Assembly (NCBI GenBank): GCA_038496445.1
Contig: JALMLS010000356.1
Span: forward strand, 1 to 64,000
Source of the DNA: Trichosphaerium sp. ATCC 40318
Lineage: Eukaryota > Protista > Tubulinea
Direction of reading: 5' to 3'
DNA: 64,000 nucleotides
This document shows, piece after piece, positions 11,547-59,775 of the stretch (position 1 is its first letter; each line of letters starts with the position of its first letter). The position numbers were made by a program, and so were the translations under genes. The notes below the pieces were generated by a model, which worked only from the letters and a program-made list of their open reading frames with translations, did no database searches and was not told the DNA's origin.

Positions 11547-13900
11547 TTTGATAGGGAAAAGGAAAGTGTGTAAAGCTGCAAGGAGCGTGGAATACTTACA
11601 ATACTAAAAATTGGTTGGCGGACAGAAAATGGTCACACAGAGAAATGGCAATTTAGCTATATCCGCCGATGTTGTTGGAAGTTTGTCTATAAAGTGATGG
11701 AAAGTACATACAGTTGCATAACAAGAGTATACAAAGTTCAACCTGTATTACGTAATCAAAGGTTTGCACTAATTTTTCGCGTTAGACCAATACCTCAATC
11801 CCAACAAAAGCGGTGCAAGACGATCTGGGAGGAAAGGAACACACGGTCCCTGGCCGATAGCTCTGGCGCAGAGCGAGCATGTGTGAGGTTTATTTACAAA
11901 ACATGATCGCGAATGCAATAAAATACAAAAAGAGAAAAAGAAAATTTTTTTTTTTTTTTTTTAAAGGGTGGTAGTGGGAGGGTGATTTCTGCTTGCTATC
12001 GTATAAACCTGCTTGAGTCGGTTGTCTGTCTTTGTTGTGTCTGTCCAGTTTGTTCAAACGCCTGAAATGTCTCACATGTTCAGACAAAATTTGGCACCTT
12101 GTTTTTCAAAGATGAAGGTTTTTAGCGCTGTTTTTGTACAACATTTTTTCATCAGAAAACAGCTCACTTTTTAATCAATCTAGGCTCTTATCAATTATGC
12201 GAAAAGTAGTGCAAACCCAAGGATAATTAAAGAACAATAACTGGAAAAAAAAGTCACGTGTTACATTTTTTGGCTAACAATGGCGGAGGTCCTTCTAGTA
12301 AGTACTATTGTAAAGATGGGAAGAACCAAGGCGTTCAGACGGAGTTACAGCAAGTTCAAATCTCGTGTTCTCGCCCACTTACCAAAAATAGTATATGTCG
12401 CGTGAACTGCCAATTCTATATCACGTGATATGCCTGTTTTTGCATGTATGTATTTTATTTCGCATGTGGTAGCTATTAGCGTTGTCTCTTACACATTACA
12501 AGCGCTTTCAGGGTGTTTTTAAGGAGTCCGTAAGATATTTTGTACCAGTTAGTTTTTTAGCACCTCTGGTGGTGTTGCTACGCGTTTTTATATTCAGGGT
12601 AGACGCTTGTGGCTTGTTTTAGAACTCAAGTATTTCTGAATGTTTTTTAGCAGCGATGCTGTTGTATTTATAATGGAACCTACACAATATTTTAGTAACC
12701 TTATGGGAGTTCAACTTTGATCGTAGAATCCTTGACTCATAAAAATTGTTAGCTAACCAATTGAATTGTGCTTAAACACAATATTTTTTTCTTCAACTTT
12801 TTTTAGAAATTATGACCGTGTTGCCTGCTTCTAACGCTCAAAACACCTGTCTTTAAGCGTGGATTACAGTACTAGTGCAGAAATCCGAACCTATAAAAAA
12901 AGGTCAAATCTACAAGTTCAAAAAAACCGGTTTGTGAAACATCTGTTTTTGTGCCTTTCTATTTCTTCTACGCTGAGCAATATCACATTACATTGGTTAC
13001 TGTGAGCAAAAGAATATTCATATAGGTCCACAAGACCTTCGGTCCTGTTTGTGATTCAAGTTCAAAACAATACATGAACAGAAACATAACTACATATCCC
13101 TCTAAGCAATGAACCTTCTATTATCTTTTTTACTTGTCACTATGTTTGTATCGTCTATTCAACAGATTGTATACATAGATGTAGATGTATCTTGGGATAA
13201 TGCCGCTGCAGTTTGTGAAGACGAGTACGCTAACTAGCAGGTTGATTATCAGCCGTATCTTTTTTTTGTGATATTTAATACCATAAGGGGCATGGTGTTG
13301 GCGGAAATCCTCACTGACGCCGACTATAACGCTGCTAAAAGCTTCAATCGCCTTGGATGGGTAAACGGTAGAAGAGATGTACCAGTTGACGCAGATTTGA
13401 AGTACGACAGACTTCTTCTCACAGTTCATTAACCTGTTAATCTGTATAGTTGTCGTGACTGTACCCGATCAACAAGTAACACAATGGCTTGCTCTATATG
13501 TACTAGCCATCTTAATACTTATGTCTGGCAACGCTCTGGGTTAACCCTTACACAGACACCGCTTTACAATGACATTGTCGGCTCTGTAAGTTAAAAGTAC
13601 TTAACCAGATGGCTACTAACGAATTATAGCCAGCCAGCAATGCGGATGTTGGCAGATACATTAGAGCATACCATAATTCGGAAGAACCAAGTATGGGTAA
13701 TCAGTATTGTCTTTACATTTCCGTTAACCTTGATCTCAATGATTTTCCTTGCACTGTTACTTGGGGTGTTTTTTGTCGTACGTATCCTTAGATGCACTCT
13801 CTTTGTAGCTATCATTTGAAATTAACTCTTCAAACTATAGAACCAAGGCCACCACCAACGGAACCACCAACAACTGAGCCGCCTACCACAATGCTTCCAA
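11547..13900 (+). repeat. Left arm of inverted segmental duplication (partner about 39020-41046)
   Basis: Long near-identical reverse-complement match covering upstream region and lectin exons, e.g. tttgatagggaaaagg at 11547 vs ccttttccctatcaaa ending at 41046. Confidence 0.92.
11760..12218. mobile_element. MITE copy A, interrupted by an ~307 bp insertion (11780-12086)
   Basis: Terminal inverted repeats (A/G)GGTTTGCACTA ... TAGTGCAAACCC; internal sequence homologous to copies at 35400 and 40667. Confidence 0.7.
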
Positions 13901-14500
13901 CTACAGAACCACCTACAACAATGCCGCCAACTACAATGCCACCTACTACAATGCCACCCACTACAGAACCACCTACGACTGAACCACCTACTACATTACC
14001 GCCAACAACTGAACCACCAACTACTGAACCACCTACTACGGAACCACCTACCACAGAACCACCTACTACTGAACCACCTACTACAGAACCACCAACTACT
14101 GAACCACCAACTACTGAACCACCTACTACAGAACCACCTACCACAGAACCACCAACTACTGAACCACCAACTACTGAACCACCTACTACTGAACCACCTA
14201 CCACAGAACCACCTACTACTGAACCACCGACGACTGAACCACCTACCACATTACCGCCAACAACAGAACCACCAACTACTGAACCACCGACAACGGATCC
14301 ACCTACCACAGAACCACCTACTACTGCACCACCGACGACTGAACCACCTACCACAGAACCACCTACTACTGCACCTCCGACCACAAACCACCAACAACAC
14401 AACCACCTACAACTGAAGTTCCGACAACACTGGCACCAGTCTATTCAAGTTTTAACAGAAAAAGTAGATGTATAAGACGCCTGTCACAGCAGCAATAAAA
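13109..14500 (+). CDS. Secreted C-type lectin domain + PPTTE mucin stalk (copy 1; frameshifted at end of stalk, lacks C-terminal domains)
   Basis: Signal peptide MNLLLSFLLVTMFVSS; CTLD motifs VSWDNAAAVCEDEGMVLAEI, GWVNG, YCLYI...LNDFPC...GVFC; four introns; 1-nt loss near 14386 shifts the repeat frame. Confidence 0.75.
13850..14430 (+). repeat. 15-bp tandem coding repeat, (E/M/L/A)PPTT
   Basis: Units such as gaaccacctactact repeated more than 30 times. Confidence 0.97.
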
Positions 14501-15353: not shown

Positions 15354-16130
15354 TTATTTTGCAATGCTCTTTTTGCTTTTTTTCCAGGTGTACCATTTGT
15401 GACTCTTTTGCTTAACTTTGTTATGAACATAATGCGTTTCCTCTGTTAACAAACCTTCACAATCCCATGTCTTGTAATCTCCATGTAATCTACCATCAAC
15501 ATAATAACATTGTTGCTTTAAGTTACCATTATCATACCACTCTTTGTATTCACCTTGTTTCAATCCTTTTATGTAATGACAATGTATCTTTAATTGTCCA
15601 TCAACATACCTACTCTTGTATTCTCCTTCTGCTTTATCAATATCATCTAAACAATACTTGTGAAATGTCACAGTACCACTAGAATGCCAATACTTGTATT
15701 CCCTCATTTTTGATTGATTCTTTTCTTTAAATTCCTCAATCTCTCCTACTTCTTGGTTGTCACTAAAGTGACTTAGGTGTGGATTGACATATACAAGTTG
15801 TTCTCTTGGACGGCCATGTGCAGTAGTCTTTTTGTATTCTTCTTTTTCACCTTCAAAATAAAAACAATGCTCAACCATTACGCTATTCTCAAGCCATTTC
15901 TTATACTCTCCATGACGTCTTCCATGCTTCCAGTTTTCTTCAAACAAAATCTGTGGCTCACTGGTAAATTTACTTTGTTTTAGAAGTTTAATCCATTTCC
16001 CATGTTTTTTTAATTCAAAATCAAACCTTGTCGCAAATGCCAAGTGTTTTGATAAAAGAGGTAGTTTAAAATAAGCTTCAAAGTCCAAATCAGCTATATC
16101 TAAGAGTAATTCAACCGGCAAGTCCAACAA
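15354..16130 (-). CDS. F-box-like + MORN-variant repeat protein (no in-frame ATG found)
   Basis: LLDLPVELLLDIADLDFEAY N-terminus; GEYKEWYDNGNL-type repeats; paralogous to 21072 and 41533. Confidence 0.75.
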   Translation of the reverse strand: MLDLPVELLLDIADLDFEAYFKLPLLSKHLAFATRFDFELKKHGKWIKLLKQSKFTSEPQILFEENWKHGRRHGEYKKWLENSVMVEHCFYFEGEKEEYKKTTAHGRPREQLVYVNPHLSHFSDNQEVGEIEEFKEKNQSKMREYKYWHSSGTVTFHKYCLDDIDKAEGEYKSRYVDGQLKIHCHYIKGLKQGEYKEWYDNGNLKQQCYYVDGRLHGDYKTWDCEGLLTEETHYVHNKVKQKSHKWYTWKKSKKSIAK

Positions 16131-18284: not shown

Positions 18285-18689
18285 AAGGTCACGTGCATTG
18301 AATCAATCAATAACCAAAATAAATACTGCTAAAAGAAAAAGCAATCTCCATTCAGTCAATGAATTTGATTGGTATTCCACTGGTCATTTCCAAACAAAGT
18401 TTGCATTCTCATTGTTTATGCCATGCATACGCCATTAGTAGCATAATTGCATTTGCTACTAACTTAATGTGAGGTGCGTTGAGTGCATTGACATCCGGCA
18501 TCACAAACAACAGTTGTCATGATATGTCCCAGCTTGCCTGGTATTATTCTTAACAAGCTACTGCATTGCGGATTATAATCAAGTAAATACTGTTCCATCT
18601 TGGTATCAATGGAAATCAGACTTTTGTGGTTAAGGGTAGCCTTTTTTCATCGAAATGAAATGTTTTTTTTGTGTTCATTAAATGCAAGC

Positions 18690-19163
18690 ATGCAATTGCT
18701 CGTTAAATACACAATTGGTTCACGTACGATCACAGTAGAAGTAGAACCTACAGACACAATAGCGCATTTAAGGCTAAAAATACATGAAAAGACTGGAAGA
18801 GCTCCGAGTAGCTTTCACCTGAAGCTTTCAAAGCTTTCAGGCTATGTAAACGATGAAATTACGTTAGAAGAGTGTAAATTGGTTGCAGGCTCCACAATTC
18901 TGCTGTATCCCAATCTATACGGTGCTGGCGGCTATGATATTAATTTACAGCTACCTACAGGACTTATAAAGGAAGTTCACTTGTTTTACTTTGCAACGAC
19001 TGGGGACCTGATTGATGCTGCTGATTGTGCGCCAAAAAGTACTACTGGACGTCTAGAAGTGTTTTTAGGCGATGTCAAACTGAACTCCATACATGCTTTA
19101 GTAAAGCAAGGTGTAGTACATAAAAAGTCAACTGTACGGATAGTTGAAGTGGATAATGTATAA
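18690..19163 (+). CDS. Intronless ubiquitin-like protein, probably two tandem Ubl domains
   Basis: MQLLVK...TITVEVEPTDTIAHLRLKIHEKTG...TLEECKLVAGSTILL is ubiquitin-like; then LYGAGG and a second, more diverged beta-grasp-like unit. Confidence 0.75.
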   Translation: MQLLVKYTIGSRTITVEVEPTDTIAHLRLKIHEKTGRAPSSFHLKLSKLSGYVNDEITLEECKLVAGSTILLYPNLYGAGGYDINLQLPTGLIKEVHLFYFATTGDLIDAADCAPKSTTGRLEVFLGDVKLNSIHALVKQGVVHKKSTVRIVEVDNV

Positions 19164-19794
19164 ATAAATGATAAAAAGACGAAATGAAGTATTTTTTTGA
19201 CGTCTTAAATAAGAACAAAGTCCACGTGATTTTACAGTTATGTGACGTTTTTAACAATGAATTATGAACAATGTTTACACTATCATATTCACTAGACTTT
19301 AGAGAAAGGCTAATTCTAAGTTCTTCAGCCAATAATGGCAAAACAAAGGTATGGTTTGATTAAACTGTGAACGCCCATCTTGTTGTCCATTATGAATACT
19401 TATGAATATTCGAATAAAGTGACAACAACATAGCTGCTTCAAACCAAAAGCTCCTCAAAAGCCTGAGTCACCAAATGCCGTGAATATTCATGAATCTTTA
19501 CGAATAAGCAATGTGGGACAATGGATATGAATATTGCTTGTTTTCATAACGCAAGAACACCATCTTCGTAGCGACAGAAAACTCGCAAATTTTAGTTACC
19601 TGAAAGTGGACAGTACAGCGTAGACATTTTGTCACGCCTCCTCGCTCGTAAAACAACATTTGGAGAAGTTTATCTTGTTGCTTGGTCGCGGAAGTAGGAG
19701 ACACTCACTTGTTTACAAAAACCGAAAACCAAAAAAAAGTCTGCGAATCGTAGTCATTGCGCTTCCTTTTTTACTTGCGATAAAGCACCTGAAG

Positions 19795-20889
19795 ATGAGC
19801 AATCTCACCCCAATCACATCCATACTACCTCTAGAGCTTGTAGTCGCTGTTCTAAGCTTTATAGACGATAAACACATGGACATCGTAGCGCGTGCATGTA
19901 GTTTATTTAACAGTGTCGCAATTACGCACTTGGGGTATCCGAGACTACGACAGAGAGTTCAAATTGACAAGTTGAGCGACTTAGAAAGACTGCACAAAGA
20001 AGCGCCTAGATTGATTAAAATAGCAAGGATTACCGTTAGTACACCACTTAAATTCTCATACGCAAAGTACCTGGAAGGAGTACATACAGTCGATATCAGC
20101 CATGTTACCAGCGATAATGAGGCCATAGCAGCACTCGCTGGTGTTCATACTATTGCTATTAGCGGTTCTGGCACGAATGATGAAGCTGTCAAAGCGCTAG
20201 CTGGTGTTCATTCGATTGATCTTAGTTTTTGCAAAAAGGTGACAGATGAAGGCATCAAAGCTCTTAAAGGTGTTCATACAATAGACCTTAGCTATACCGC
20301 TGTGACAGATGAAGGTATTAAAGCACTCAAGGGCGTATATAACATAAACCTTGCGGTCACTAAAGTGAAGAATGTAAACGTGCTAGCAGGTGTTCACACA
20401 ATCGATTTGACTGATAGTAAAGTTACAGATGAAGATATAATACCACTCGCAGGTGTTCATGAAATAGACCTGAAAAGAACCCTAGTTACTGATTTATGCA
20501 TCAAGGCCTTGAAGGGTGTTCATACTATAGGCCTTGAACAAACAAGAGTGACTGATGATGGTATTAAAGAACTCAAAGGAGTTCATAGTATCAATCTCAA
20601 CAAAACTGGTGTTACAGATGAAGGCATCACAGCTTTAGCAGGCGTTCATGCCATATGCCTTGCCAGCACTGAAGTGACGGGTGAAGGTGTTAAAGTTCTC
20701 AAAGGTGTACACACAATAGACCTTTCATCTACAAAAGTAACAGATGAAGGAGTACTTGGACTTTGCCCTGAATTACGCAGTCTTAGAATTCTTGATACAA
20801 ATGTGACTGATGATTGTGTTTACTACAAGCTAGAGGATGTATTCAATGTTGACGTCACAACCTGCCTTGGTCTTTTTGATGACGATTGA
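19795..20889 (+). CDS. Intronless F-box + LRR protein (GVHxIxL repeats)
   Basis: ILPLELVVAVLSFID...VARACSLF F-box; about 11 repeats of GVHTIDLSxTxVTDEGIKAL. Confidence 0.9.
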   Translation: MSNLTPITSILPLELVVAVLSFIDDKHMDIVARACSLFNSVAITHLGYPRLRQRVQIDKLSDLERLHKEAPRLIKIARITVSTPLKFSYAKYLEGVHTVDISHVTSDNEAIAALAGVHTIAISGSGTNDEAVKALAGVHSIDLSFCKKVTDEGIKALKGVHTIDLSYTAVTDEGIKALKGVYNINLAVTKVKNVNVLAGVHTIDLTDSKVTDEDIIPLAGVHEIDLKRTLVTDLCIKALKGVHTIGLEQTRVTDDGIKELKGVHSINLNKTGVTDEGITALAGVHAICLASTEVTGEGVKVLKGVHTIDLSSTKVTDEGVLGLCPELRSLRILDTNVTDDCVYYKLEDVFNVDVTTCLGLFDDD

Positions 20890-21071: not shown

Positions 21072-21731
21072 CTATGTACTACCATTTATATAATGCCGTT
21101 GTAAATAAAGCTCTCCATCATTCCACCAACACTTGTATTCACCTTCTTTTACTCCGTTTACATAATTGTATTGTGTTGACAGTTGTCCGTTTTCATACCA
21201 TTCCTTGACCTCTCCATCAAGTTGACCTTTAGAGAAATAACATTGTTTCTGTAAAGTACCATTCCTATACCACGTTTTGAACTCTCGTTTTCCATTGATA
21301 TCATTGTATTTCCTCATTAGTTGGCCATTATCATACCAGTATTTTGAATCGCCTTGAATACAATTCTTAACAAAAGTATACTGTCTTGACAGTTGCCCAT
21401 TTTTGTACCAACTCTTGAACTCCCCTTCTAGTATGTCATTGGAATAATGACTTACTTCTTTCAATTGGCTGTCATTGTACCATACCATACGTTTGTTTGT
21501 ACCAAGATTACCGTGGTTCCAATATTGAATTTTTTGGGTTTGGTAGCCAGTTTTAGTTTTTTTTTTCTTCACCCATTTTCCATGTTTTTTGAGGTCACCA
21601 TCATACCTTGTATTTATTGCAGCCTGTTTAGATAATAGAGGCCATTTACAGTATATTTCAAAGTCCAAGTCAATGATATCAAGTTGTAGCTCAACTGGAA
21701 GATACAACAGACTGTCCGTATTCAAATTCAT
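21072..21731 (-). CDS. Intronless F-box-like + MORN-variant repeat protein
   Basis: LLYLPVELQLDIIDLDFEIYCKWPLLSK; GEFKSWYKNGQL-type repeats. Confidence 0.88.
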   Translation of the reverse strand: MNLNTDSLLYLPVELQLDIIDLDFEIYCKWPLLSKQAAINTRYDGDLKKHGKWVKKKKTKTGYQTQKIQYWNHGNLGTNKRMVWYNDSQLKEVSHYSNDILEGEFKSWYKNGQLSRQYTFVKNCIQGDSKYWYDNGQLMRKYNDINGKREFKTWYRNGTLQKQCYFSKGQLDGEVKEWYENGQLSTQYNYVNGVKEGEYKCWWNDGELYLQRHYINGST

Positions 21732-24406: not shown

Positions 24407-24695
24407 TGATCCTCTCCATTTGTTTTCGTGTAAGAATAAATAACTAAAGTAATAGTGTTTTAGACAATTTTTGCTAGAACCATATCGAGAACTTTGTAGT
24501 TTTTTTTTAGGCTTGCTGGCCGGAGAAATAATGAAACTTAGCATGGAAACCACGTGATGGGTTCTTCACGTACCTTACTACGTTTTACTGGGCAATCGAC
24601 TGTACTTGACTGAACATGCGTGCGAGGTTTTATGTCGATGAATGACCACCTAATCTCAAAGTTTAGGTTGGCTGTCTGCCATAATACCAAGTTAA

Positions 24696-26602
24696 ATGGG
24701 TAATTCTACGCACAGAGAAATTGGACAAACAACTTTTGGTGATGGCACTAGATACGCTGGTGAATTTATAAATTACAAAATAGATGGATTCGGCGAGTAT
24801 ACGTGGCCAGATGGGTCCAAATATGTTGGCGAATTTAAAGCTAACAAATTAGATGGCAACGGAGAGAAGACATGGCCAGATGGGACCAAGTATGTTGGCG
24901 AATTTAAAGATAACAAATTAAACGGCAAAGGAGTGTATACATGGCCAGATGGGTCTAAATATGTTGGTGAATTTAAAGATGACAACCGTAAAAACGGAGA
25001 GTTCACGTGGCCAAATGGGTCAAAATATGTTGGCGAATTTTCAGATGACAACCGCGGCGGAAAAGGAGAATATACATGGCCAAACGGGACCAAGTATGTT
25101 GGCGAATTTAAGGATAACAAACTAGACGGTAAAGGAGAGAAGACATGGCCAGATGGGTCAAAGTATGTTGGAGAATTTAAAGATGACAATTTCGTAAACT
25201 CTGGCTGTGTTTATTTCCCTAATGGTACGATATGGAAATTCGAATGGGTATTGAATGAGCAGATGGAGGATTGTGAAATAACATTCCCGGGTGAGAGAAC
25301 AATTGAAGCAAAATGGAGAAAAGCTGAAAGCAAGTTGATAACTTTTCTTGATGAATACAAAGCAACACTCAACCTTACATGTGAGGCTCCAACGCTCTCG
25401 TATATTGGAAGAAATAAGTCAATATCACCGTCAAACTGGACATGCAATCAGGTACTGTATGTACTCAACAAGATTGAATCAAAGCTTGTTGATATATTGG
25501 AAGGGCAATATTTGAGGTACTAGTATGAATTAGCAGGTCATTGACATTCTTTACATAGTGGCAAGGACTTCTTGGCATTGGACAAAACAACACTTGTGTC
25601 ATTGCTTAAGGTACCCTTAGGGTACGCAAACAAACTTCTAGACTACATTGTGGACCTGAAACAAGGTACTAAAACCGTTTGAACTTTTGTTGACCTTTAC
25701 AAATAGGGTCCTGTCATCAATATCAATCAACACTTTTTGAACAAGGTAGGCACCCGTTCGTGGTATACTTGTATATTCACATTCTTATAGTACCTAAAAA
25801 CTCAAAAGAGTTTAAAGACTTGGAAAAAGAAGTTAAAGCAGCAACAAACAATCATATTGAAGTTTACATTCCACCACTCCAACCCAAACCACTTATTTTC
25901 ATCCTTACTGGTGCTCGCCGTATTCATAACCCCAAACTCAGGTATAATACACAACGTTGTTTTATCTGAAGATTATATCTTAGAGACGCATATGAAAACA
26001 TGAAGCAACAATTAAACGGAGATAATAGTGAGTTCATTGGATTTCATGGCACTTCACCCTCAAACTTGGAGAGTATTTGCAAGTACGATTCCACGTGATA
26101 GATCTTATCAATATGTGAACTAACTAGTGTATAGAAGCGGGTTACTTCCTATTGGTCACAACAAAAACAACAGCAACGCAACTGATAGCGGTGCGTGTAA
26201 GTTTTCGGTTGTCTTCTGCTAAAATACAGTCAAAAAAGGATGGTTCGGCGACTGTACAAAGGGCATCTATGTTTCGCGATACATGGATTACTGTCTTAAG
26301 TACTGTCGCCCAAATGGAAAACTCACGGCTGTGAAGCCAGGTGATACTGTTAGAGTGCTTATGTTTCGTGTGCTTCCAGGAAAAACCAACTACGTAAAAA
26401 AAGTATGTAAAAACAACAAAGTCAGTATTTGATTGTTTTTGTTTAGAAAACACCTGGACTGCAACCCACGCCTGGATATGATAGTAATAGCTCACCTCAA
26501 TACATGGAATGGTTTCTATACTCATCCAATCAGGCATTGCCTGTTTATGAACTCGAGATACGTGCTATGTACAACAGCCGTACAAAACAAGATGATCAAT
26601 AA
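24696..26602 (+). CDS. MORN repeats + SAM domain + PARP-type ADP-ribosyltransferase domain
   Basis: About seven 23-aa MORN repeats; SAM-like WTCNQVLYVL...LSGKDFLALDKTTL..LKVPLGYANKLL; ART motifs RIHNPKL, GFHGTS, WFG...GIYVS, LMFRVLPGK, GYDS, YMEWFLY, QALPVY. Confidence 0.85.
24735..25190 (+). repeat. 69-bp tandem MORN-coding repeats
   Basis: Recurrent tggcca(g/a)atggg...aa(a/g)tatgttggcgaattta at 69-bp spacing. Confidence 0.9.
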
Positions 26603-26834
26603 TATCTGAATAAAATTGTTCTAAAACAGCCTCAGTTTCATAGATCACCATGGACATGTCAAAAAATGTAATTTGTTCATACGTCAAAAGAAAATGGAGT
26701 AAACCATGTACGCCAAAAATTTGTACACTGAGTAACATAGCGCCCTTTTTTAACATTTATTTGTATCATATTCTTTTCTTGTCAACAACTTCATCAACAA
26801 ACTAGCATACACGTTTAATTCCATACAGCTTTGG

Positions 26835-37251: not shown

Positions 37252-39796
37252 CTAACATGTGATTTTTATGATATCTTCCTCTTCTACGTTAAGTTGATCA
37301 ACTGATGTTTTAGATAGTATAACACAGTCTGCGCCTTCTTGAGGATTAAGTTCACGTATATCCGCTGCAGAAATATCGAGGATGTCAACTGAATCGCTTC
37401 CGAAAAGATTAAAGTTTCCTTTAACATTGTCCAAGTCAAAGCATGTACCTCCTTCTCCTCCTGTAGCGAACAATTACAAATTTTGGATTGAGTTTAGTAT
37501 ACATACCTATTATCTCGTTTGATACAGTTGAATTTGATAAACCAACACAGTTACTACCATTGCCAGTGTAAACAAATTGCATTGATGATTGGTCAGCAAT
37601 CATACAATTGTCTCCAATTGACATGTCTACTGTTTTAGCAATAGCATTATTACTTAGTTTGATACAATCATCGTCTTCTCCAAGATCAATAAACTCAATT
37701 GATCCAACATCTGATGCTTCAACAGAATCGAATCCAGACTCTTAAAACAAGGTGTTAGCGGTTATGGTATGAGCATAACAAACAAATGCGATTTACCTCC
37801 ATAAATGGGTGGAATGTATGTACTTCCACTTGCAATGATACAATCATCACCTGATCCCAACAATACATCATTAATAATCGAAGCACCAGAAAGTACTTTG
37901 ATACAATCATTTCCATTTGATCCTTTTACACCATGTGATAAAGTAACACCTTCTGAAATGATCAAACAAGGCAATGCTAATGTGCTTAAATCAATTTCCA
38001 CTCCTTAAACAACACGATTAGTTGTTGTTTTTACAATTAACAATGTATGTTTGTACCTGGAATATTACTTGATGTTATTGTAACACACAACGGATCTGTA
38101 AAGTCGCATGTATTGCAAGATGTGATGTGACAAGATGTACATTCACCAGATGAAGTTGTACAAGAACATCCAGTACATGTGTCTAAAGCACGTGTTGGAG
38201 GAAGTGTTGTTGGCGCTATTGTTGTTGGCGCTTGTGTTGTTGGTGAAAGTGTTGTTGGTGGCGTTGTACTAGGAGGGTGAGTTGTAGGAGGTAGAGGTGT
38301 AGGTGGGAGCATTGTTGGCGGTTCGGTGGAAGGTGGCTCTATAGTTGGTGGTAATGTGGTAGGCGGTAATGTAGTGGGTGGGAGCGTAGTAGGAGGCAAC
38401 GTGGTAGGTGGCTCAGTAGTTGGAGGTTCTGTAGTTGGAGGTAACGTTGTAGGTGGTTCTGTAGTTGGAGGTAACGTTGTAGGTGCCTCTGTGGTAGGTG
38501 GCTCTGTAGTTGGTGCCTCAGTTGTAGGTGGGAGATTTGTTGGCGGTTCTGTAGTTGGTGGCTCTGTAGTTGGCGGTAATGTAGTGGGTGGGAGCGTAGT
38601 AGGAGGCAACGTGGTAGGTGGCTCAGTAGTTGGAGGAATCGTTGTTGGAGGTTCCGTAGTTGGCGGCTCAGTCGTTGGAGGCTCTGTGGTTGGTGGTTCC
38701 GTAGTTGGAGGCTCAGTCGTTGGAGGCTCTGTGGTTGGTGGTTCCGTAGTTGGAGGTTCCGTGGTTGGAGGTTCCGTAGTTGGTGGTTCAGTTGTTGGTG
38801 GAGCTGTAGTTGGAGGTTCCGTAGTTGGCAGCAATGTAGTGGGTGGGAGCGTAGTAGGAGGCTATGAAAATATTAGCATTTACTTACAAACATATTGTGT
38901 ACCTCAGTTGGAGGTTCAGTTGTAGGAGGCTCAGTAGGTGGTAAAGTAGTTGGGGCTTCAGTTGTAGGTGGTTCTGTGGTAGGAGATTCAGTCGTAGGTG
39001 GTTCTGTGGTAGGAGGCTCAGTTGTTGGCGGTTCTGTCGTTGGTGGTGGCCTTGTTGTACGTGGTTCTATAGTTAACAGAGTTAATTCAAATGATAGCTA
39101 CAAAGAGAGTGCATCTAAGGATACGTACGACAAAAAACACCCCAATTAACAGTGCAAGGAAAATCATTGAGATCAAGGCTAACGGAAATGTAAAGACAAT
39201 TCTGATTACCCATACTTGGCTCTTGCGAATTATGGTATGCCGTAATGTATCTGCCAACATCGCATTGCTGGCTGGCTATAATTCGTTAGTAGCCATCTGG
39301 TTAAGTACTTTTAACTTACAGAGCCGACAATGTCATTGTAAAGCGGTGTCTGTGTAAGGGTTAACCCAGAGCGTTGCCAGACATAAGTATTAAGATGGCT
39401 AATACATATAGAGCAAGCCATTGTGTTACTTGTTGATCGGGTACAGTCACGACAACTATACAGATTAACAGGTTAATGAACTGTGAGAAGAAGTCTGTCG
39501 TACTTCAAATCTGCGTCAACTGGTACATCTCTTCTACCGTTTACCCATCCAAGGCGATTGAAGCTTTTAGCAGTGTTATAGTCAGCGTCAGTGAGGATTT
39601 CCGCCAACACCATGCCCCTTATGGTATTAAACATCACAAAAAAAAGATACAGCTGATAATCAACCTGCTAGTTAGCGTACTCGTCTTCACAAACTGCAGC
39701 GGCATTATCCCAGGTTACATGTGCATCTATGTATACAATCTGTTGAATAGACGATACAAACATAGTGACAAGTAAAAAAGATAATAGAAGGTTCAT
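37252..39796 (-). CDS. C-type lectin + mucin stalk + Cys-rich linker + GxGxD(C) repeat domain (copy 2; 1-nt deletion in lectin exon 4)
   Basis: Lectin exons near-identical to 13109-13777; aatgcgatgtt vs aatgcggatgtt frameshift near 39262; PPTT repeats; downstream exons GSNGNDCI, LGSGDDCI, LGEDDDCI. Confidence 0.75.
38190..39050 (-). repeat. 15-bp tandem PPTT(E/L) coding repeat, interrupted by a 41-nt intron
   Basis: Direct inspection; intron 38862-38902. Confidence 0.95.
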
Positions 39797-41532: not shown

Positions 41533-42366
41533 ATGGCCAAAATCACCAACAAGGTACATACGTTATGAAAACAGGTTAAAATGTTGCTTATGACTTGGAT
41601 TTAGACAAACGACATTCCTTTGGAGACTCAGGTTGATATTTCGTGTCTATCAAACCTCCCGCATGAAATACAGCTAGATATAATCGATTTAGACTTTGAA
41701 GTGTATGTAAAGTGGCCGTTATTGTCGAAATACACAGCAACACTGAGGTTTGATGATGAAATGAATAAACATGGCAAATGGCTTACCCGCAAAATACAAA
41801 CACGTGGACGGGCTGAATATCGCGAAACAGCTATCATTGACAAACAATATACTTTTTTACATGGCAAAGTTGAAGGGGATTATAAAGAGTGGGACAATGG
41901 TATACTGGTAAAGAATTATTGTGTCATTAATGGTAAGATCGAGGGAGTGGTTAAAAAGTTTGATGCTTTAACTGGAAAATTGTTCTTCGAGTGTAATTAC
42001 ATCAACAGCAACAGAGAAGGATATTGCAAATACTGGTATAGCAACGGTCAATTGAGAGACGAATCTTATTACAAAGAAGATAAGGTAGAAGGAGAGTACA
42101 AAGCATGGAGTGGGAATGGTCTATTGGTATTACATTGTTACTATGTTAATGGTAAGAGAGACGGAGAGTATAAACAATGGACTGAAAAAGGACAATTGAT
42201 GGTACATTGTAATTATCTAAAAGGTAAGGAAAATGGAGAGTACAAAGAATGGTACCACAATGGACAACTACAACGACATTGTAATTATGCCAATGGCAGA
42301 TTGAAAGGTAAGTATAAGCAATGGCACATCAGCGGTGAGTTGAATATTGAGTCTACTTATAAATAA
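41533..42366 (+). CDS. F-box-like + MORN-variant repeat protein
   Basis: LSNLPHEIQLDIIDLDFEVYVKWPLLSK and GEYKEWYHNGQL repeats. Start inferred from exon MAKITNK (41533-41553) plus a 51-nt intron (41554-41604). Confidence 0.82.
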
Positions 42367-58601: not shown

Positions 58602-59666
58602 TCAATATGTATAAATTGTCTTTACTCTAGACAATGTTTTAATAACCCCATCTGTTACTTTTATACAATAGTAAAGGTACAGGGTGTGTGCTCCCGTCAA
58701 TGCCTTCAGACCATCATCTGTTACAGTTGTATGTGATAAATCAATTTCATGTACACCTGCCAATGCCTTTATACCCTGATCTGTAATCAATTCACAATAA
58801 TCAAGTTGTATAGTATGTACTCCTGCCAAAGCGTTCAAACCTTCATCTGTTACATTTGTAGATGATAAATCAATTTCATGTACACCTGCCAATGCCTTTA
58901 TACCCTGATCTGTAATCAATTCACAACAATCAAGTTGTATAGTATGTACTCCTGCCAAAGCCTTCAAACCTTCATCTGTTACAGTTGTATGTGATAAATC
59001 AATTTCATGTACTCCAGCTAGTGCTTTGATACCCTCATCTGTTATAAATGAACATCCATACAAGTTGATTGTGTGAACACCTGCCAAAGCGTTCAAACCT
59101 TCATCTGTTACATTTGTATATGATAAACTTATTTCATGTACACCTGCCAATGCCTTTATACCCTGATCTGTAATCAATTCACAATATTCAAGTTGTATAG
59201 TATGTACTCCTGCCAAAGCCTTCAAACCTTCATCCGTTACACTTGTACGTATTAAATCAATTTCATGTACTCCAGCTAGTGCTTTGATACCCTCATCTGT
59301 TATCAATGAACATCCATACAAGTTGATCGTGTGAACACCTGCTAACAAGACTAGATGACTGTCATCAAAATTGTTAAAACGTTGACTACAAGATATTTTG
59401 GTATTTTTAAGTAAAGGGCTACGAAACAGCAGTGAAAATTCACTTTCAGTATTAACAGAAATGAGGTCATATCCAATGTGTTCGTGTACAATATCTCTCA
59501 TAAGCCGACAAGTTTGTGCTGAGTTTAGTACAGAACGTGGGCCACACCGTAGAATGTGGACAATTATTTCAACTGGGAATGCCATGAGGTCAGATTTGAT
59601 GTTATTTTCAGTTACTGTAGCTATAATATCGCCAGTTTTTTTCGTTTTGTTGCTGTTGCCTTCCAT
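58602..59666 (-). CDS. Intronless F-box + LRR protein with alternating 22/21-aa repeats
   Basis: LMAFPVEIIVHIL...AQTCRLM; 11 GVH/GAH repeats with 129-bp DNA periodicity. Confidence 0.92.
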   Translation of the reverse strand: MEGNSNKTKKTGDIIATVTENNIKSDLMAFPVEIIVHILRCGPRSVLNSAQTCRLMRDIVHEHIGYDLISVNTESEFSLLFRSPLLKNTKISCSQRFNNFDDSHLVLLAGVHTINLYGCSLITDEGIKALAGVHEIDLIRTSVTDEGLKALAGVHTIQLEYCELITDQGIKALAGVHEISLSYTNVTDEGLNALAGVHTINLYGCSFITDEGIKALAGVHEIDLSHTTVTDEGLKALAGVHTIQLDCCELITDQGIKALAGVHEIDLSSTNVTDEGLNALAGVHTIQLDYCELITDQGIKALAGVHEIDLSHTTVTDDGLKALTGAHTLYLYYCIKVTDGVIKTLSRVKTIYTY

Positions 59667-59775
59667 TTGTAGATTGAACGTATTTTTATAAGTCACAAAT
59701 GTTATTTTTTGCGTGCCGCAGTGGGTTAAACACCTGTTTGACTGTAGGTGACTTTCTTTGTTAAGATCGTTAAGA

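Follow-up and report, generated by a model that had tools for sequence, protein, structure and literature searches.

The genome of the protist Trichosphaerium sp. ATCC 40318 carries, on contig JALMLS010000356.1, a gene whose product has MORN repeats at its N-terminus, followed by a SAM domain and by an ADP-ribosyltransferase domain of the PARP type. The window analyzed here is the first 64,000 nucleotides (nt) of that contig, an AT-rich stretch of eukaryotic composition with a G+C content of about 37%, and the gene occupies positions 24696-26602 of its plus strand. It comprises eight exons separated by GT..AG introns of 41-52 nt, and its 1593 nt of coding sequence specify a product of 530 amino acids (aa). 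An original prediction, made from the letters of the window, had described this locus as having a tankyrase layout with MORN repeats in place of ankyrins, and every part of the MORN-SAM-PARP observation is confirmed at these positions. Together with the mechanism proposed below, the account that we regard as probable is that the protist expresses the locus as a single gene, whose product runs from seven MORN repeats through a SAM domain and a linker of 10-13 residues to a C-terminal PARP-type catalytic domain.

Gene structure and transcripts

The sole long open frame near the gene on the plus strand is an open reading frame (ORF) at 24696-25523, which encodes the MORN part and, when left unspliced, stops at a TAG at 25521-25523. 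Downstream of this ORF lie short open stretches in shifting frames, interrupted by GT..AG segments of 41-52 nt, and joining these stretches yields a single frame. Transcript evidence comes from spliced RNA contigs of two public runs, referred to here as X1 and X2. An X2 contig that starts at 24658 is immediately preceded by letters of the template-switch oligonucleotide, which places the 5' end of the messenger RNA 38 nt upstream of the ATG. The 5' untranslated region (24658..24695, plus strand) contains no ATG of its own.

Exon 1 (24696..25516), delineated by the ORF, the Pfam MORN matches and an X2 contig, carries the start codon, the MORN array, a linker in which one or two hairpins resemble degenerate MORN units, and the N-terminal half of the SAM domain. 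The second half follows in exon 2 (25559..25665), both of whose flanking introns are spliced out in X1 and X2 contigs, and the SAM-PARP linker alone makes up the 39 nt of exon 3 (25707..25745), which is bounded by joints seen in both runs (25663>25705 and 25743>25789). Exon 4 (25791..25941) encodes the N-terminal part of the PARP domain and is reached by the X2 contig from exon 1 as far as 25818 and by X1 contigs as far as 25905; its donor at 25942 was placed through gap-free alignment to homologues. The FHGT motif is encoded by exon 5 (25984..26082), with the codon of His394 at 26045-26047, and an X1 contig joins this exon to the next (26082>26135). Exon 6 (26135..26190) encodes the loop that follows the His strand. 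Exon 7 (26239..26402) encodes GIYVSRYMDY, with the codon of Tyr435 at 26268-26270, and is matched from 26238 to 26402 by X1 contig 5, which then joins 26447. Across this last joint (26402>26447), exon 8 (26447..26602) supplies YMEWFLY, with the codon of Glu500 at 26507-26509, and the stop codon at 26600-26602; all eight exons lie on the plus strand. An AATAAA at 26609-26614, 7 nt past the stop codon, is a possible polyadenylation signal, and the contigs stop short of the 3' end.

The joint on which the architecture turns is that of intron 1 (25517-25558), a 42-nt GT..AG intron that is spliced out in an X2 contig (25514>25557). That contig, 401 nt long and free of mismatches, extends from 25290 in the MORN exon to 25818 in exon 4 with introns 1, 2 and 3 removed. 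Because it joins the MORN exon to the SAM exons and the first PARP exon, the transcript does not end at 25523 and continues into the PARP-coding part of the gene. In X1 contigs, introns 2, 3, 5 and 7 are spliced out. Intron 6 was modeled as a 48-nt intron with its donor at 26191 (GTGCGT) and its acceptor at 26238, which fits the family without gaps. Further support comes from X1 contig 5, which matches the genome only from 26238 on and carries four unmatched letters before that point. Two simpler models, in which exon 6 ends at 26196 or 26190 and the acceptor lies at 26229, would insert five or three residues relative to all homologues; they were rejected in favor of an intron at 26191-26238 because these extra residues have no counterpart in homologues and because the contig match stops at 26238 rather than 26230. 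The exon joins as a whole are validated by the spliced C-terminal part (aa 320-530), whose full length is matched by about 25 of the 59 proteins retrieved with exon 7 (see below), at E values of 1e-37 to 1e-54.

Several other X1 contigs match the gene with several differences and then diverge from it (25825-25854; 26020-26158), so that a paralogue is likely transcribed as well, giving a second MORN-SAM-PARP-like transcript in the same organism. The full-length protein of the window gene itself is absent from all protein collections searched.

MORN repeats, orthologue and SAM domain

Seven canonical MORN repeats of 22-23 residues, of the tandem YxGxW/F..G..G type, span aa 10-169 (24723..25202, plus strand). 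In exon 1, Pfam PF02493 identifies seven stretches with an E value of 3.6e-42, and at the DNA level Tandem Repeats Finder (TRF) reports a tandem array with a period of 69 nt, 6.3 copies and 77% matches. The expectation of about seven near-identical repeats thus holds for their number, while near-identical was somewhat generous given 77% matches between copies. The seven regular units are followed by one or two degenerate hairpin-like units and then by a helical linker. No other PARP or canonical MORN copy was found within the window. The variant repeat MORN_2 occurs in three ORFs of the window, at 15357-16130 (minus strand), 21075-21731 (minus strand) and 41620-42363 (plus strand), with Pfam E values of 3e-8 to 2e-18; these are too divergent from the canonical array of the present gene for tblastn with that array to find them.

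The same three domains occur together on a transcript of a marine protist in the MMETSP collection. This protein, P0166, is an orthologue of the window protein and its closest relative found. It has 445 aa, is 43.6% identical to the window protein over 440 aa and keeps the glutamate of the catalytic domain; Pfam recognizes its MORN repeats (1e-17) and its PARP domain (1.7e-10). In two of its isoforms, the transcript reads through an intron: that of P0001 lies exactly where the window gene has intron 7 (26403-26446), and that of P0167 exactly where it has intron 5 (26083-26134), so that both species have introns at these two positions. As a side effect, the public ORFs of P0001 and P0167, labeled complete, are truncated by intron retention.

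Both proteins begin with MGN, the window protein as MGNSTHR and P0166 as MGNKNG followed by a polybasic patch, KSRKKKK. The PROSITE myristoylation pattern calls for a small residue at the position where the window protein has His6, and an N-terminal lipid anchor is accordingly not supported for the window copy. For P0166 alone, a putative anchor of the myristoylation type is plausible.

Between the MORN array and the catalytic domain, aa 244-309 (25425..25664, plus strand) form a region that the original prediction had called SAM-like and that intron 1 splits in two. Neither half by itself, whether searched with Pfam or as an exon piece, gives a match. The corresponding segment of the orthologue aligns to the window protein without gaps at 38% identity. 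Taken alone, that segment stays below threshold in Pfam (SAM_PNT, E 0.04; SAM_2, E 0.13) and against the PDB, where the SAM domains of Scm, PHC3 and SAMD1 are among its sub-threshold matches, and its language-model neighbors are mostly SAM clusters. A small profile made from the orthologue and the aligned window pieces reaches the PHC3 SAM at 2e-4 and the Scm SAM at 3.8e-4, and 14 of its 16 PDB matches are SAM domains. An AlphaFold model of the orthologue segment is a five-helix bundle with a mean predicted local distance difference test score (pLDDT) of 81 and a predicted template modeling score (pTM) of 0.70. The top 50 Foldseek matches of this model are all SAM domains or SAM-containing chains, led by Scm, PHC3, L3MBTL3, SAMD1 and Ph, and it superposes on the PHC3 SAM with a template modeling (TM) score of 0.88-0.90 by target length and a root-mean-square deviation of 1.0-1.1 Å. 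The SAM domains of SARM1 and TIR-1 are among the fold matches, and that of tankyrase is absent from the top 50. By profile and by the fold computed for the orthologous segment, the middle region is thus a SAM domain.

The catalytic domain and its family

The PARP-type domain spans aa 314-530 in exons 3-8 (25718..26599, plus strand), as identified by a family hidden Markov model (HMM), a PDB profile search and a model of a family member. As had been foreseen, the ORFs reveal the MORN part only: searched singly against Pfam and the PDB, the SAM and PARP exons return nothing useful beyond a weak hint of DUF3715 (E 0.25). The domains have diverged too far and are divided among too many small exons for such searches, and they become visible only once spliced. 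Exon 7 alone, searched against 1.84 billion representative proteins, nevertheless retrieved 59 proteins. An HMM of the resulting family, built with the window protein excluded, matches that protein at E 1.8e-73 over profile positions 5-224. The Pfam PARP model PF00644 matches 35 of 60 family members at E<1e-3, several of them above the gathering score (P0166 at 41.2 bits and P0001 at 38.1 bits, against 26.7), and DUF3715, the model of the TASOR pseudo-PARP, matches 22 of the 60, with P0166 at the borderline (28.8 bits against 28.5).

Among solved structures, the family profile ranks TASOR first (3.3e-15; 59 bits), followed by PARP12 (1.3e-10; 44 bits), by ZAP, PARP15 and PARP14 (2e-8 to 7e-8) and then by the tankyrases (about 1e-6; 31 bits). 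A model of one family member, residues 518-743 of P0014, whose domain is about 45% identical to that of the window, has a pLDDT of 94.9, and its Foldseek matches are all PARP domains at E values of 8e-16 to 1e-11, with TASOR at 8e-16 and tankyrase-1 at 9e-13 (TM 0.69-0.77). The catalytic domain is therefore not a tankyrase orthologue, its nearest solved relatives by sequence being the TASOR pseudo-PARP and PARP12.

Three residues, His394, Tyr435 and Glu500, occupy the positions of the His-Tyr-Glu (H-Y-E) triad, and Gly395, Ser437 and Tyr442 fall in the pocket for nicotinamide adenine dinucleotide (NAD). In a set of 119 family domains the histidine is present in 108 of 110, the tyrosine in 114 of 116 and the glutamate in 111 of 111, and the glycine after the histidine, the serine and the second tyrosine are similarly kept. 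The profile alignment to PARP12 sets the family motifs FHG, GVYVS.Y and LEW on FHGT, GSYFA..Y and S-I-FVIF; the last of these pairings puts the family glutamate at the third triad position, which is occupied by isoleucine in PARP12. The assignment of FHGT, GIYVS and YMEWFLY as the three triad motifs, made by eye in the original prediction, was therefore right. The PARP domain is the end of the protein, with neither SPOC-DomI nor TEX15 domains after it. Just past the last strand, the family has a C-terminal tail with a conserved R-T-x-A-D-D, which reads SRTKQDDQ in the window protein (26578-26599); we know of no counterpart of this tail in other PARPs.

The PARP subfamily of which this catalytic domain is a member is found across protists and retains the H-Y-E triad and the neighboring NAD-pocket residues. 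Its members come from kinetoplastids (Bodo, Neobodo), diplonemids, euglenids, amoebozoans (Mastigamoeba, Thecamoeba) and many metagenomes, and their N-termini carry ankyrin, SAP, WWE, FHA, TPR, SPRY or kinase domains. No MORN repeat was found in 73 further members, and no SAM domain in the other members examined. Large Atlas clusters combining MORN and PARP were not found either. A word-indexed search with full-length P0001 was swamped by MORN proteins, and one with its SAM-PARP part returned one further protein. In a tree of catalytic domains, computed without human PARPs, the window protein and P0166 form a sister pair (support 1.00) on a long branch, and the window domain is placed near amoebozoan sequences. 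The MORN-SAM form is thus a distinct subclade of the subfamily, present in at least one other species. Because relatives within the family lack a SAM domain, the SAM-PARP junction was assembled independently of that in tankyrase.

Relation to tankyrase and other known systems

The resemblance to tankyrase 1 and 2 (PARP5a/b) is one of plan. Both have a repeat array, a SAM domain, a short linker, a C-terminal PARP domain that lacks a helical regulatory domain, and the H-Y-E triad, and in the window protein the SAM domain (aa 244-309) lies directly before the PARP domain (start at about aa 314-320). The catalytic folds are similar as well, with TM scores of about 0.69-0.77 for the homologue model. 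The differences begin with the repeats, which are MORN beta-hairpins in a protein of a mere 530 aa, whereas tankyrases have ankyrin clusters and are much longer; Pfam finds MORN and no ankyrin in the window protein. The catalytic domain falls into another subfamily (31 bits to tankyrase versus 59 to TASOR) and ranks tankyrase below TASOR, PARP12, ZAP, PARP15 and PARP14, and the SAM domain is nearer to Polycomb-type SAMs. The order of domains claimed originally is found, and its description as convergent agrees with a catalytic domain in a separate protist family (TASOR and PARP12 nearest), a SAM domain nearer to those of Ph, Scm and PHC3 than to that of tankyrase, and family relatives that have no SAM domain.

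In the published classification, the true tankyrases with ankyrin-SAM-PARP architecture make up clade 4 and are restricted to animals, and protozoan ankyrin-PARPs carry WGR and regulatory domains in place of SAM (Citarelli et al. 2010, PMC2964712). Outside animals, repeat-carrying PARPs are described only with WGR and regulatory domains and never with SAM (PMC2964712, PMC4245714), and MORN repeats go unmentioned in both Citarelli et al. 2010 (PMC2964712) and Perina et al. 2014 (PMC4245714). No description of a MORN-PARP or MORN-SAM-PARP protein was found in the limited literature searched. The protein adds a new arrangement of domains to the PARP superfamily, distinct from tankyrase and apparently undescribed.

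Of the other systems that invite comparison, the closest is the DUF3715 (RDTS) pseudo-PARP of TASOR and TEX15 (PDB 6tl1), the best match of the family by both profile and fold, whose Pfam model also reaches the 22 members mentioned above. It differs in that the window family keeps the H-Y-E triad and NAD-pocket residues, has its domain at the C-terminus with no SPOC-DomI following, and occurs in protists rather than metazoans. The nearest active enzymes by profile are PARP12, PARP13 (ZAP), PARP14 and PARP15, which align over the full length of the domain at E values of 1e-10 to 6e-8. These have isoleucine or leucine (H-Y-I/L) where the window protein has Glu500, and their N-termini consist of zinc fingers, WWE domains or macrodomains. 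Two further parallels concern the layout of the protein. In the Plasmodium kinase TKL3 (MORN-SAM-kinase), MORN repeats are likewise followed by a SAM domain, which is reportedly needed for the activity of the C-terminal enzyme (PMC2933843); its effector is a protein kinase and not an ADP-ribosyltransferase, and the likeness considered here is one of layout. In SARM1 and TIR-1 (ARM-SAM-SAM-TIR), a repeat domain, SAM-mediated oligomerization and an NAD-consuming effector come in the same order. The fold of the effector, the type of repeat and the number of SAM domains (one here, two there) differ, so that this parallel remains an analogy, even with SARM1 SAMs among the fold matches.

Proposed mechanism and alternatives

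The domains suggest how the protein might work. It would be an active NAD-dependent ADP-ribosyltransferase, as the retained catalytic residues imply. Its SAM domain may bring copies of the protein together, as a dimer or a head-to-tail oligomer, since its nearest relatives are the polymerizing SAMs of the Polycomb type. By analogy with tankyrase, such assembly would raise the local concentration of catalytic domains and permit modification in trans. The MORN beta-hairpin array, in turn, could tether the enzyme to a membrane or partner protein and thereby select its substrates, as in other MORN proteins. As for the product, the H-Y-E triad is necessary for poly-ADP-ribosylation yet does not suffice for it, given that PARP3 and PARP4 have the triad and add single units. 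Because the nearest active relatives, PARP12, PARP14 and PARP15, are mono-transferases, we lean toward mono- or short oligo-ADP-ribosylation over long chains.

Several observations weigh against this reading. No one RNA contig covers exon 1 through exon 8, and introns 4 and 6 are crossed by none, their positions being set by gap-free alignment to homologues. The fold models were made on homologues, P0001 for the SAM domain and P0014 for the PARP domain, and not on the window protein. Among solved structures, the best match to the family profile is the inactive pseudo-PARP of TASOR, and ADP-ribosyltransferase activity is predicted from sequence and models, just as the function given to the MORN array is drawn from other proteins. 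The residues of the SAM polymer surface, finally, are not kept between the window protein and P0166. At the PHC3 positions mutated in 4pzo and 4pzn (L967R, L971E), the residues are L and N in the window protein and R and K in P0166, and polymerization is therefore not readable from the sequence.

A bolder form of the mechanism would make the MORN-SAM-PARP proteins oligomerization-switched ADP-ribosyltransferases, in which SAM assembly on a membrane or ligand bound by the MORN repeats turns on catalysis. They would then be a second, independent invention of the principle behind tankyrase filaments or SARM1, in a family that, as the sister of the TASOR/TEX15 pseudo-PARP of animals, would have kept its activity. 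This extension is speculative and unlikely.

Comparable in standing is the possibility that the protein acts in conflict or immunity, with the MORN array as sensor, the SAM domain as switch and the PARP domain as an NAD-consuming effector in the manner of SARM1. It would then be one of a large, diversifying set of repeat-PARPs in the genome, activated by ligand-induced oligomerization. Such a set would fit a family that swaps sensor-type domains at its N-terminus (Ank, TPR, SPRY, WWE, FHA, kinase), a SAM domain with SARM1 and TIR-1 among its fold matches and the existence of a paralogous transcript. The MORN repeats of the window protein, however, are regular and not hypervariable, and a counterpart in a second species, 44% identical and with common intron positions, looks like ordinary vertical descent, which makes an immune role an unlikely explanation.

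Somewhat less probable still is that the protein is a pseudo-enzyme like TASOR, its PARP-like domain having no NAD+ binding and serving as an interaction or nucleic-acid-binding module on a MORN/SAM scaffold. The prominence of TASOR at the top of both the profile (3.3e-15) and the fold (8e-16) matches, together with the DUF3715 matches in 22 of 60 family members, is what such a protein would predict. Against this, the histidine, tyrosine and glutamate, the glycine after the histidine, the serine and the second tyrosine are near-invariant across 119 domains of distant protists, as would be expected under selection for catalysis. TASOR reportedly lacks these catalytic and NAD-pocket residues. 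An active enzyme is thus the reading that we retain.

True orthology to tankyrase, with the ankyrins replaced by MORN repeats and the SAM-PARP module descended from an ancestor shared with the tankyrases of animals, is very improbable. The shared SAM-PARP order, the short linker and the good fold matches to tankyrase catalytic domains (9e-13, TM 0.69-0.77) speak for it, but the profile gives tankyrase 31 bits against 59 for TASOR and 44 for PARP12, all other family members lack SAM, the SAM domain best matches those of Ph, Scm, PHC3 and L3MBTL3 with no tankyrase SAM in the top 50 fold matches, and true tankyrases occur in animals only (Citarelli et al. 2010, PMC2964712). Equally improbable is that the gene model is an artefact and that a gene with MORN repeats alone stops at 25523 ahead of a distinct SAM/PARP gene or pseudogene, as the TAG of the unspliced ORF at 25521-25523 and the lack of a contig over all exons might suggest, for the spliced X2 contig reads across the joint 25514>25557 and on through exons 2-4, intron 1 splits the SAM domain into halves of which neither would function alone, and P0166 has all three domains on one transcript.

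Other features of the window

Beyond this gene, the window contains two intronless LRR_6 ORFs at 19660-20886 (plus strand) and 58605-59696 (minus strand), the second of which has an F-box-like match; both belong to the F-box/LRR family. A ubiquitin-family domain is encoded by an ORF at 18600-19160 (plus strand; Pfam E 2e-9). Two extensin-like, proline-rich ORFs, at 13792-14472 (plus strand) and 38040-38834 (minus strand), coincide with two blocks of extreme GC skew, -0.32 at 14-16 kb and +0.32 at 38-40 kb.

Significance

In practical terms, the value of the finding is modest, as it adds one further domain combination to a superfamily in which more than 100 are known. For the biology of ADP-ribosylation, a protist SAM-PARP protein whose repeat array and catalytic subfamily both differ from those of tankyrase offers an independent case in which to ask whether SAM assembly is a general means of controlling ADP-ribosyltransferases. 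The family to which it belongs is large and modular and extends across euglenozoans and amoebozoans. With its H-Y-E triad kept, and with no closer relative of the inactive TASOR domain known, it provides a useful outgroup for tracing the origin of that pseudo-enzyme. If the family should indeed prove to be the still-active sister of the TASOR/TEX15 domain, it would show which enzyme the silencing domain descends from.

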